From Bugula neritina (taxonomy: Eukaryota; Animalia; Bryozoa): a DNA stretch of 64,000 nucleotides. The stretch lies in assembly GCA_964035545.1 (NCBI GenBank), contig OZ037773.1, forward strand, positions 5,175,751 through 5,239,750, in the 5' to 3' direction. The translations under genes and the position numbers were made by a program. This document shows positions 19,694 to 37,500 of this stretch, in pieces; the first letter of the stretch is position 1; each line of letters opens with the position of its first letter. Below the pieces are notes generated by a model that saw nothing but the letters and a program-made list of their open reading frames with translations, ran no database searches and had not been told where the DNA came from.

Positions 19694-21581
19694 TTATTTT
19701 TCACAAACAAATCTTTTATTGTCAGAATCACAGAAGTTGTCATTCCATCTGAAGTTAGTAAACATGTTAATACAACTCCCGGTGTTATCGGGTTGACCTC
19801 CATTGAATTTACTCGTGTCCAAGGCATCTCCATTGTCCCAGACCCAATCACTGCCAACTTTAGTTACACCCAACCAAATCTCGTGTCTCCATGCTACATA
19901 AGGACAGCACGTACAAACTACATTGACATATTACACATATTAGGTTTAAAAGCTAAAATAACTATGTTTCAAGACAACAAAACGCACATGTTAGTAATGC
20001 TGGCTAGAGTATATCAGAAGCTGTGGCTACATCAACACATGTAACACTGCTAAAAAATAAAGGTAGGTTCAACTATTGAGCAATATTTTTGTCAGCTAAA
20101 TGGATTGTGATAAATAAATGCTTCCACTTTAAATTGATATTTTTACAGATTAAACATTCATGTTCTTTGAAAGCATTGGTGACTAAAATTCTTTTTTTTC
20201 TACCTCTAGTTACTATCTGTGCTGTTCTGACTGTTTGCTAGTTCCATTAGTCTAGTAGTTAACACGCTAGCTTGTACTATTACTGCGCCTTACCCGGCTC
20301 ACCCGACTCACCCGGCTTACCCGGCTCACCCGGCTCACCCGGCTCACCCGGCTAACCCGGCTCACCAGGTACACAATATGCATATCCTGTTAGATTGGAA
20401 TATATATATGTGGTTTACGCACAGGGTTCCTCAGCCACCACAGTCTGGTACCACTCATATATTCCTTCAGTGTTTAACATGAGAAGATTAGCTCCAGTAG
20501 ATTGGCAAGCACCGCGAGCCATATTTGTTGTTTTCGCCTCAAAAAAAAACTTGATGCAAGTCTTGCGAATTGGATTTATCTTCCACCCCTCGTCACATAC
20601 TACACTGGTGAAATCTACAATAATGAAATAATATTACTTTTCATTACAAATAAATTGATATTAATTTATATATATTAATTTATATATATATATACCATGC
20701 GATAATAATATATATATATATATATATATATATATATATATATATATATATATATATATATATATATATATATATATATATATATATATATATACATATA
20801 TATACATATATATATATATATAATGTAGTGTGTTCAGATTGTTAATGATACATATATGACAATTTGACAATATTGACAATCAGCATACATTATATATATA
20901 TATATATATATATATATATATATATATATATATATATATATATATATATATATATATATATATATATATATATATATATATATATATATATACATATCAG
21001 AAAATTTTTCTGATTGCATGTTGTTTGTCTGCTCATAGAGAAATTTGAAAACATCAGAAAACAATTTTTATTTTCTTCCAACTTATGAAGTTTTTTTTAG
21101 GGATTTTTATGATGCAATATTTTGAATAGATCATTCACTAGTTTGTGGACTTACCTGTGTCATACACACCAGAGTAACCATTATCAGTATCTGATGAGCT
21201 CACATAAGTGTTGTACTTGGACCAGAAACACTCCTGAGTAGAATTCTTATAAGCAAAAGATTTACAGCCAGTATTTCTCAGACAGTGTTTTGCACATCTA
21301 GAGACAGAGCTTAGTGTAACTGAAGTTGGACTCACTAAAACTCTGTCTGTTGTATTCAGATGAAAATACACGCTGTCTATGGTACCATAAACCTATAATA
21401 CAAAACCTAAAATCTTTACATTTCATCATTCATATGGAAAAATGTTAAAAATATTCAAGCTTAAATTATGTCCATTACCTGAAATTAAATACTTTGAATG
21501 ACAAACAACAATTATTACCTGGCAAGTGATAAAATTCAACCACAGAAGTCCAGCTTTAAATCTGACAGTATGGCTTCTCAT
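19694..21581 (-). CDS. Lectin gene 4: signal + PAN + C-type lectin (QPD/WND)
   Basis: Exons 21519-21581, 21155-21392, 20423-20614, 19694-19893 ([11 protein letters not shown]...QPDNTGSC...WNDNFC...FVCEK*). Confidence 0.9.
20290..20366. repeat. (ACCCGGCTC)n 9-mer array
   Basis: About 8 units. The paralogous position in gene 3 (~14305-14330) has only a short version. Confidence 0.85.
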
Positions 21582-34536: not shown

Positions 34537-37500
34537 ATGATTGTATTTCTTACTATTTTGTTGGTAGACTTTGGGGTAAGTTTTATTTTGTTGGTAAGTC
34601 TGTACATAGTAATACCTGTAATTGGAGCAAATAGTTAAACTATAATAAATGCCAACATACTTACTCAAGTAAAATATCTAATGCATTCAGTTACTAAAAC
34701 TGAGTCTATTATAAGAAACATACCTCAAGATAAAGTAAAAACTGGAGTCTAAGTTAATACTGTTACTTACAGACTCTATAAATAATGTTTCTTTTATTAG
34801 TGGCAGCGCTATGGACAGTTTGCAGCTGATTGGCTGTCACTTGCATTCTATAATTAGTTTACAGGCCTCAAGTTGATCTCAAATAATAACCAAATGCATG
34901 GCTAATTAATTTCTTTAAAAACATTTGGCTTATATGTGAATCATATTACAAAGCTAACATTGATTTAACATCAGGCTTACATTTGCAAAACAAAGCAAGC
35001 AAATTTTTACAAAAATATTTTACATTTACAATTTTTTTTAGATATTTTAGCTATTGCATAAAATAATTGTTTACATCTCTACATGTGAATGACCTATTTT
35101 GCCACTGACTTTACAATTGCTTTGGTTTAAACATCTTTTAGCTATGTGGGACATCTCAAAACCTTTACTTTCCTCAAGATACCTTAGGCAGAGTGTTAGT
35201 GAGTCCAACTTCAGTTACACTCAGCTCTGTCTCCAGATGTGCAAAACACTGTCTGAGAAATACTGGCTGTAAATCTTTTGCTTATAAGAATTTTACTCAG
35301 GAGTGTTTCTGGTCCAAGTACAACACTTATGTGAGCTCATCAGATACTGATAATGGTTACTCTGATGTGTATGACACAGGTAAGCACTGAGGGCTTGCCT
35401 TCTGATGAATTTACAGTTTTTGTTGTATAAATCAATTATAATAAAATTAACACTTCTTGCATGAAAAGTAATTTAGGTGAGTTAAGGTAATGTGAAATGT
35501 CTACATATATAATATAGATATTTAAACTCCAGAAAAGTTAAATTATATATTTTTACTATAAATCTCCAATAAAAGTAGTGAACAGTGAAAAACAAAATTA
35601 ATAGAAATGGGTTTAATTGTAAGGTTGAGGTTTTGTAGCTATATAATAATTCTTTGATTTTTTCCTAGTTTTACTATTATTATGATTATGTAGATTTTCA
35701 TTACAAAATAAATGCAAAATGCTGCTTTGAAATCAATATAAAATCAAATTAATATCAAAATAACAATAATTGGTAAAAGCAGTCTTTTTTTAAACCATGA
35801 ATTTGCTAAATATTGATTTACGTATATATTTGTATAGAGAATCAAAACATTTCTTGTTTAACAGTAGTTTGAACAGTTGGCTACTTGCCAACTTTCATTA
35901 AGCATATAAGCAAAACAAACTACCAATTTCTGAGCTGTAAACAACCTTCAGCTTTTACCTCTGACATTTATTTCAAAGCAAAGTTGGAGAATTTTTAATG
36001 CGAGTGCGAATAGTTTTACAGCTATAGCATGAAATACTTTTAAAGCATTTGCTTTTATACAATTTTTATTTGCTTTTATTCAAATTGTAGTTTTTTCAGA
36101 TATTTTATACCACCAAGACTGCTCATCTGATATATTATTTGAAAATATACTGCCTCCTAATTATAATAGACCTTAACGTTTACTCTTAGATTACCCGACT
36201 GTGAGTTGTGAAGAAACTTGGGTGAAAAATCCAGTGAAACATACTTGTGTGAAAGCTTTCACCGCAGGCAGAACCTACTCTGAAGCTCAACTCGAGTGTC
36301 TCAACATTGGTGCAGAGCTCTTTGTCATGGAACCAGCTGGGGTCGTTGATTGGTATAAGAAGATAAGTGCAGAGATGTGTAAGAGAATGAATGTCGATTG
36401 AGTTATATGTGGAAGTAATTACCCTCCCCTTCCTCTCCACTGGGAATCAAACCTCAAACTTTTTGACTTGTAAGCCAGCATGCTACCCACTACTATATAG
36501 GGGCTAGTGGGGGAGGCTCAGCAAACTAATTTTGAGTCTTGCAATAAATTAGAATATAGAGGAACACTTGAAGTATATTTTATTTGCTTTCACAGTGAGA
36601 GCTGCACAATTGTTGGTCTCTTTTCATTTAACAATGACTCCATCGAAAGGCAATGCTAATATAACACAGTTTCCTAGCAAAATCAATAAATAAATTAAAC
36701 TAGGTTCAAAAGAACCAGTCGTGGATGATTCCGTTCTATTTTTTAATCTTTGCTGTTTCATGTATTGGTTAATGGATTTTTCTGAGTGCAAATTACAATA
36801 ATATGTTGGCTAAAATTATGATATTGCAAATTTTCTAATGTATGATGTTACATACATATATCCTGCATTATATTCAGAAGAGTAAAACCAAAATGTTTTA
36901 ATCTGAGTTATAAGACCATGTAAACTGATAAACTGTTATATTGAGACCCATTTGATTCACTACAGTTTTTTTATAAGCTGGTGATCAAAATTATATATAA
37001 ATATTTTTAATGAAGATTTTAAATTCTAATGGTTCATATAGGTCGACGTTAGTAAACGCCATTTTAACTTGGTTGATTTATATACCCAATTGAAAGAAAG
37101 GTTTTTAAGTTGGTTAGGATTTATTTTTATTTTGGCAGACTGGATGCCCTTCTTAGCATTACTAAAAACTTTTACTGGGGTTTGAACCATTGACCATGTG
37201 TTAACTATAGGTCAATGCGCTTTGATTAAATATACTTATATTGCCCAAATATGCAATAGATTTTAGTATGAGATGAAAGAATTAATGTACTTCAATTTTT
37301 TTAATATAACCATCCAAAATTTTGCCAAAACTCAATTTTTTTTAGCATGGCAAGCGAACTCTTGGGTAGGAGCAACTAAAAACTTATTGTCTAGCTCTTT
37401 AGAGTACACATGGTCTAATGGCATCAGCCTTGACCCTAGCAACTACTTCTCCAGGCAGCCAGACAACAGCGGGGACTGTATCAGAGTACTATCATCTGGA

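Follow-up and report, generated by a model that had tools for sequence, protein, structure and literature searches.

Domain-limited Identity of a PAN Core Across Diverged Lectin Genes in Bugula neritina and the Case for Recurrent Ectopic Gene Conversion

The PAN-lectin array and its shared core

The stretch of DNA considered here, referred to throughout as the window, comprises 64,000 nucleotides (nt) from the bryozoan Bugula neritina (assembly GCA_964035545.1, contig OZ037773.1, positions 5,175,751 to 5,239,750 of the forward strand). It is AT-rich (GC about 30%), and across its 64 kb holds a tandem and inverted array of about 10 four-exon genes that are predicted to encode secreted proteins that have a PAN/apple domain and, after it, a C-type-lectin domain (CTLD). 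Within the array, a 190-nt tract encoding the PAN domain is nearly identical in three genes, G4, G5, and G7, the last of which lies on the opposite strand, and is shared in part by a fourth, G1, whereas the rest of these genes is strongly diverged. The tract is best explained by recurrent short-tract ectopic (interlocus) gene conversion among the paralogues, a reading that we regard as highly probable.

The gene models were built from stop-to-stop reading frames and splice sites conserved across nine paralogues, and they follow a fixed plan, with a candidate short hydrophobic first exon, a PAN exon, and two CTLD exons. The PAN exon is 238 nt long (235 nt in G3), beginning in phase 0 and ending in phase 1; the CTLD exons are about 190 and 200-227 nt and are joined by phase-1 introns. 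Genes G1-G6 are on the minus strand and G7, G8, G10, and G11 on the plus strand, and G9 has a PAN-PAN-F-type lectin arrangement. When the conceptual translations of G4 and G7 (about 210 residues each) were compared with Pfam profiles, both PAN_1 (PF00024; E of 6e-10 and 2e-9, respectively) and Lectin_C (PF00059; E of 5e-12 and 4e-9) were recognized above the gathering score. The candidate signal exons, 17-22 hydrophobic residues with phase-0 donors upstream of each gene, were identified by sequence logic only; within that limit they do differ among G4, G5, and G7, as an earlier reading of the window made from the letters alone (the sequence-only reading) had proposed. The features on which the argument turns are as follows.

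7399-7636, minus strand: PAN exon of G1 (splice sites conserved among paralogues, as in the next three)
21155-21392, minus strand: PAN exon of G4
27415-27652, minus strand: PAN exon of G5
35142-35379, plus strand: PAN exon of G7
7460-7588, minus strand: partial core of G1, about 128 nt, 95% identical to G4, G5, and G7
21155-21344, minus strand: PAN core of G4, the last 190 nt of the exon, running from the RVLVSP Arg codon through the final base of the exon
27415-27604, minus strand: PAN core of G5, placed by alignment; 8/190 differences to G4 and 7/190 to G7
35190-35379, plus strand: PAN core of G7, with private bases G at 35195 and T at 35293
21345-21392, minus strand: G4-specific 5' 48 nt, the linker that follows the signal peptide, with identities of 81% (to G5) and 54% (to G7)
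19694-20614, minus strand: CTLD exons of G4 (20423-20614 and 19694-19893) with the intron between them; nearest to G3, not to G5 or G7
24188-26796, minus strand: CTLD exons of G5 (26605-26796 and 24188-24387), the intron containing a 59/118/238-nt satellite; orthologue on related-species contig L003
36190-37560, plus strand: CTLD exons of G7 (36190-36378 and 37346-37560), with no more than 52% identity to any other array gene

The coding tract that begins RVLVSPTSV is present in four copies in the window, in G1, G4, and G5 on the minus strand and in G7 on the plus strand. Over the last 190 nt of the PAN exon, G4 and G7 differ at exactly 5 positions, G4 and G5 at 8, and G5 and G7 at 7 (95.3-97.4% identity), with 2-4 private differences kept by each copy, whereas the corresponding numbers in the first 48 nt are 22, 9, and 21. 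A blastn search of the window with the G4 region returned G7 at 96.98% over 199 nt (opposite strand), G5 at 91.3% over 264 nt, and G1 at 94.85% over 136 nt. In the four-way alignment, near-identity begins at the Arg codon of RVLVSP, 48 nt inside the exon, and in G4, G5, and G7 it ends within a few bases of the splice donor, AG/GTRAG. In G1, the initial 128 nt of the core have 6-7 differences from the others and the remaining 62 nt have 33, this last part of its PAN exon being unrelated to the other cores. Beyond the tract, the introns (300 nt on each side) align at the level of shuffled sequence (z from -3.3 to 1.5), and the 5' 48 nt, the introns, and the two CTLD exons have 48-67% identity, or are saturated at synonymous sites or unalignable.

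The identity extends to synonymous sites. Core synonymous divergence (dS, by the Nei-Gojobori method on codon alignments) is 0.075 for G4-G7, 0.101 for G5-G7, and 0.126 for G4-G5, but the CTLD exons overall are 48-67% identical with dS from 1.4 to saturated. The CTLD exons of G4 and G5 have dS of 1.4 and 2.1, and G4 and G7, which are 97.4% identical in the core, are 48.7% and 49.5% identical in the two CTLD exons, with dS saturated. PAN core dS is thus far below CTLD dS, a comparison by exon that the sequence-only reading had recommended. That reading had described about 190 nt of G4 and G7 as differing at some 5 positions, with G5 similarly close, the first 50 or so nt of the G7 exon, the flanking introns, and the CTLDs as highly divergent, and the similarity as stopping at the donor and including synonymous sites, all of which is borne out by the counts above; the span that it gave, 21155-35379, ends at the last exon base of G4 on one side and of G7 on the other. 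It had also called the exchange exon-limited and named genes 4, 5, and 7. The likeness is indeed confined to the PAN coding part and does involve all three, but each gene retains its own version of the beginning of the exon, so that the term domain-limited is to be preferred: the tract is bounded by the domain and not by the exon, with the first 48 nt outside it in all cases. The phenomenon is also wider, embracing part of G1 and a second PAN type shared by G6 and G8.

31343-31532, minus strand: PAN core of G6 (exon 31343-31580), with 13/190 differences to G8, of which the 3' part has 1/109
39286-39475, plus strand: PAN core of G8 (exon 39238-39475), from the homologous Arg codon to the donor, at about 3-fold depth in sequencing run X1 (see below)

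Between G6 and G8, identity is 44% over the initial 48 nt of the exon, 93% in the core, and 61-67% in the CTLD exons, and the edges of their shared tract are the homologous Arg codon (GRYLFNP) and the donor, as in G4, G5, and G7. The edges match the limits of the PAN fold in two PAN lineages. Both pairs show nested blocks, G6-G8 with 85% and then 99% identity and G4-G5 with 81% and then 96%, and such blocks of unequal age point to repeated events.

Conflicting histories and the age of the tract

A maximal-segment test in the style of GENECONV, applied to 503 variable sites with 10,000 permutations, gave p <= 1e-4 for every focal pair; this is the permutation version of a check that the sequence-only reading had suggested. 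Trees for the two parts of the genes disagree. In the tree for the PAN core, the terminal branches of G4, G5, and G7 are 0.011-0.024, whereas in the CTLD tree G4 is sister to G3 and G7 has a terminal branch of 1.0. Approximately unbiased (AU) tests with the CTLD data rejected a clade of G4, G5, and G7 (p 0.0011) and one of these with G1 (p 7e-5), and the PAN data rejected a grouping of G3 with G4 (p 1e-60). The CTLD exons of G3 and G4 are 85-90% identical and their introns are alignable at 72-83%; this pair has young CTLDs (dS 0.31-0.35) and old PANs (dS 1.45).

G3 (13690-17232) is itself composite, having a G2-like PAN exon (84-90% identical, with an alignable upstream intron) joined to G4-like CTLD exons and introns. 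With a G2-like 5' half and a G4-like 3' half, it indicates that the array also evolves by unequal crossover, and the gene order G4-G3-G2 fits its being a duplication product of that process in the anti-Lepore order. The chimera is older than the separation of B. neritina from a related species, as judged from orthologues in the latter (contig L005, 5294-6464).

The related species provides a clock for the array. Its sequence consists of host DNA (GC 30%) on contigs from two IMG metagenomes (samples 3300003318 and 3300002729) that were reached through protein searches, which returned no near-identical proteins, only short gene calls on these contigs. A word-based protein search with the G4 PAN exon as query gave one 74-residue match, and with the last CTLD exon of G7 it gave none, so that no G7 orthologue was recovered; an exhaustive HMMER search found distant PAN proteins and five short metagenome gene calls, which led to the related-species contigs. 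Searches of a metagenome contig collection by protein alignment and with an exact 22-nt core pattern had no match, and the collection evidently excludes both IMG samples. Contig L005 is collinear with the window from about 20255 to 8621 (about 11 kb) at 84-89% identity and holds orthologues of the 3' end of G4, of G3, and of G2; an orthologue of G5 is on L003 and L004, one of G6 on L007 and L008, and a G1-like gene is on L002.

Orthologue dS is 0.15-0.21 for G2, G3, G4, and the first CTLD exon of G5. In the PAN exons of G2 and G3 and the CTLD exons of G3 and G4, orthologues are closer than paralogues, which shows that those exchanges predate the species split. In the core shared by G4, G5, G7, and G1 (the A type), the relationship is the opposite, with paralogue dS (0.075-0.126) below the orthologue dS. 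Over the last 87 nt of the core, G5 has 1 difference to G7 and 2 to G4, compared with 6 to its own orthologue on L003; similarly, the 3' core of G6 has 1/109 differences to G8 and 5 to its closest relative in the other species, on L007. The genes were distinct before the species split, and the divergence of the tract is younger than the split.

The G5 orthologue contig keeps the last 87 nt of the core, lacks about the first 100 nt, and begins about 94 nt upstream of what is retained; positions 1-94 of L003 and 1-114 of L004 are unrelated sequence that runs to the contig end, identical in the two samples. An assembler break at a repeat would fit this loss, or the exon may have been disrupted or a repeat inserted. 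On L001, tandem PAN exons of another A-like type (828-990 and 5189-5343) are 96-98% identical to each other, a likeness that takes in the 5' 48 nt as well as some of the upstream intron, and they are either a young duplication or a further homogenized pair. Three G6-like sequences of the related species carry differing mixes of G6-type and G8-type variants; being about 90% alike over 1.4 kb, they may be young paralogues and not alleles.

The same comparison bears on whether any exchange is needed. The core might have stayed alike under extreme purifying selection at the nucleotide level, imposed, for example, by splicing enhancers, an antisense transcript, or an RNA element that overlaps it, and the core is in fact somewhat better conserved between species than the CTLD in some genes (94.5% for the PAN exon of G2, 93-95% for the 3' core on L003), with a core dN/dS of about 0.2. 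Orthologous cores nevertheless gain synonymous changes at the usual rate, like the neighboring exons, in four genes, with dS of 0.075-0.40 (0.146 for G3, 0.197 for G6, and 0.40 for the G1-like gene); the other PAN types of the array share only 43-58% identity with the A type, no Rfam family lies inside the tract, and the combination in G3 and G4 of young CTLDs with old PANs is impossible under such constraint. Constraint without exchange is consequently a very improbable account.

A second alternative is that unequal crossover or exon shuffling spread one PAN module in one-off chimeras that then diverged in the ordinary way. The array does evolve by unequal crossover, as seen with G3, and G4 and G5 share an older and longer block that includes the 5' 48 nt (81%, dS 0.5) and the acceptor region. 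However, a single crossover is insufficient to place a 190-nt tract with an exon-internal 5' edge in the inverted G7, whose remaining parts show no more than 55% identity; the blocks of unequal age nested in G4-G5 and G6-G8 indicate repetition; and the crossover products arose before the split, while dS in the core falls below that of the orthologues. We consider this alternative improbable, and the data are better accommodated by recurrent conversion.

Reads, flanking repeats, and mechanism

Near-identity over a short (190 nt), multicopy tract is a setting prone to cross-talk in short-read polishing, in which the reads of one paralogue correct the others and create false identity, and the reads available for B. 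neritina itself come from a single run. This public run, X1, was examined as contigs with associated depths, aligned to 34200-39700 (G7 and G8), and covers every bin of that interval at a depth of about 75-120. Over the G7 core the depth is 729 and 387, against about 90, or 6-8-fold, and over the G8 core it is 305; at 35293, the private T of G7 is present at a depth of about 104, the single-copy level, as compared with 504 for the C of the other copies. One X1 contig (34815-35225) matches with zero differences and joins the unique upstream flank of G7 to the core, including the private G at 35195, and a second starts 27 nt inside the 3' edge and continues into the intron, so that both edges of the tract are bridged. 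The depth fits about 6-8 copies of the core genome-wide, some two more than those in the window. The depth of the tract together with a private base at single-copy depth excludes a polishing artefact at these genes, a concern that the sequence-only reading had asked to be settled with reads. It should also be noted that polishing is unable to turn about 50% identity into 97%, that each copy has its 2-4 private differences, and that the independent metagenome assemblies of the related species carry the same core beside G5-like and G1-like flanks. For the tract as a whole, an origin in assembly or polishing is most unlikely.

Two further runs from the same study and under the same organism label, X2 and X3, contain about 3% of the sequence words of the stretch; aligned to 34200-39700, they nevertheless give high depth over the G7 and G8 PAN cores, in many variant contigs of 76-170 nt, with loose ends at 35190 and 35314/35318 that resemble G1-type flanks. 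Their source could be RNA, a different population, or a different species.

The signal and PAN exons of G5 lie between repeats of a distinctive kind.

27034-27386 and 28568-28919: direct repeats bracketing the G5 signal and PAN exons, 350 nt, 92-97% identical, each ending in (TA)n
27278-27312 and 28811-28845, plus strand: type-I hammerhead cores, CUGAYGAGGGGACAAAYCCCGAAACAGCUGCUGUC

The core has the hammerhead form (CUGANGA ... GAAA ... GUH), stems I and II fold in both repeats, and stem III is a short palindrome. Judged by its sequence, the repeat looks like a retrozyme or Penelope-type element that is antisense to the gene. Rfam searches, at gathering thresholds over the whole window and at E <= 5 over 19-41 kb, reported nothing in the tract and no hammerhead. 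Matches to a loose hammerhead regular expression on the antisense strand of the PAN cores of G4, G5, and G7 were rejected by eye, the bases that would close stem II being unpaired. The bracketing repeats raise the question of whether the signal and PAN module of G5 was mobilized through RNA as a retrozyme-like unit. No core-flanking sequence is common to G5 and any of G4, G7, or G1, however, the window has only two hammerhead cores, and repair templated by cDNA would bring neighboring exon sequence or drop introns, neither of which is seen. Transfer of this kind is extremely improbable.

Recent ectopic conversion within the PAN domain, a non-reciprocal exchange, is supported, as the sequence-only reading had proposed, by the dS contrast, the discordance of trees in the AU tests, the permutation test, the orthologue comparison, and the reads. 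The 190-nt PAN domains of G4, G5, and G7, and a shorter part in G1, would have been overwritten from one another by homologous repair that used a paralogue 6-14 kb away as template without crossover, probably by a pathway of the synthesis-dependent strand annealing type; the inverted orientation of G7 would be tolerated by such conversion. The edges would lie where homology ends, on the 5' side at the Arg codon with which the PAN fold begins, a hypervariable linker of 16 codons preceding it, and on the 3' side at the splice donor, past which the intron sequences fail to align. Only the constrained domain may stay similar enough for strand invasion, and heteroduplex would be barred from extending into the linker or the intron. 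Each event would restore the identity that enables the next, so that the PAN core could evolve in concert while the CTLD exons diverge. Every recipient keeps the 238-nt exon length and the reading frame, and these, like the retained 48-nt linker, are predicted by homologous replacement.

Several points weigh against this interpretation. The case for conversion is indirect, donor and recipient are unassignable with a star-like core tree, and for a short internal tract conversion is formally inseparable from a double crossover. The gene models are predictions from sequence, the locus being absent from the RNA runs. X1, the sole run for B. neritina, may come from the very sample used for the assembly, and its alignment covered G7 and G8. 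The related-species contigs yielded no orthologue of the PAN exon of either G4 or G7, and L002 may not be a strict orthologue of G1 (dS 0.4-0.7). In a tree of 129 nt of the core, L002 pairs weakly with G1 (support 51/70), which leaves species and gene unseparated, and the case for G1 depends mainly on distances, with about 9 versus 3 lineage-specific sites by eye, a marginal difference.

The tripeptide at the canonical sugar-binding position of the CTLD is QPD in G3, G4, and G7, QPN in G1, RPN in G5, QAD in G2, and EPN in G6, G8, and G10, and the WND position in the second CTLD exons of G1-G10 is also variable (WND, WYD, WDD, and FDD). This variation suggests that sugar specificity may have diversified. 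Because these motifs differ between genes, the family pairs a shared PAN with diversified lectin heads. The array might accordingly be imagined as a constant-plus-variable lectin system in which selection favors conversion that keeps a common PAN identical in several genes, the domain fixing its edges in two or more independent PAN lineages, with a shared docking or oligomerization surface through which hetero-oligomers of differing sugar specificities could form, and if this were true, conversion would be part of the function of the family, beyond a mere by-product of proximity. We hold this extension to be doubtful, although possible. Selection for a shared PAN interface is to be taken as a hypothesis, and a simpler cause, that heteroduplex stops where flank homology is lost, fits the sharp edges.

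Other features of the window were also noted. G11 (54648-55670) is a near copy of G10 with a PAN exon broken by a stop or frameshift and a first CTLD exon that has lost its N-terminal Cys context, and is probably a pseudogene. The satellite in the G5 inter-CTLD intron (24736-26079) is built of 59/118/238-nt units, the 59-mer being present about 19 times, and has swollen the intron to 2.2 kb, compared with about 500 nt in the orthologous intron of the related species. Downstream of G4 (19076-19253) and of G3 (13213-13336) there is a 25/48/73-nt tandem repeat that is strongly expanded in the related species (L005, 1028-1481 and 6813-7276). A dispersed repeat of about 200 nt, probably a short interspersed (SINE-like) element, is present with 74-87% identity at 16855-17084, 41670-41906, 44521-44657, 45272-45468, 46002-46221, and 51363-51588, and also in contigs L001, L005, and L007.

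Comparison with known systems

Short-tract interlocus conversion is classical in vertebrates, in exons of MHC class I and II and in SIGLEC11/SIGLEC16, RHD/RHCE, and gamma-globin. The present array resembles those cases in the size of its tracts (tens to a few hundred bases), in identity at synonymous sites, in paralogues that are closer than orthologues, and in mosaic genes, but the vertebrate cases mostly involve young duplicates with alignable introns, whereas here the partners have reached synonymous saturation outside the tract, which stands as an isolated island of homology. As a natural example of conversion at work on a 190-nt island between such genes, the array is in this respect unusually clean. 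It also carries a warning for annotation: whole-protein trees of such arrays blend two histories, and short-read assemblies break at the tract, as the metagenome contigs did.

In Biomphalaria glabrata, the resistance-associated locus LG11L includes adjacent gene models, 41 and 42, that encode PAN/Apple plus C-type-lectin proteins (PMC13712769). The two-domain architecture is the same, and there too the copies are adjacent in a region that the study describes as prone to tandem duplication, a likeness that is drawn at the level of domains only; domain-limited conversion is not reported in that study.

The closest parallel is with the paralogues of CEACAM1, paired receptors in which the N-domain exon evolves in concert by gene conversion (PMC7042247; also PMC2832619 and PMC11646289), the events affecting exons more than introns (PMC7042247). 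In both systems a clustered family of immune type, with some inverted partners, shows conversion detectable by GENECONV in one domain exon while introns are little affected, and one domain is kept alike while the remaining protein differs. They differ in that the homogenized domain of the CEACAM1 family is the one that binds ligands and pathogens, with divergence in the signaling parts, whereas here the accessory PAN is homogenized and the presumed sugar-binding CTLD diverges; in addition, the first 48 nt of the exon lie outside the tract here, and the organism is an invertebrate. For invertebrate immunity, this suggests a division of labor between a homogenized accessory domain and diversifying sugar-binding domains. 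Conversion focused on a domain exon in clustered immune families is already well documented, and the array is a new and tidy case of it, set apart by the extreme divergence around the tract, by the inverted partner, and by domain-defined edges that are repeated in two PAN lineages.

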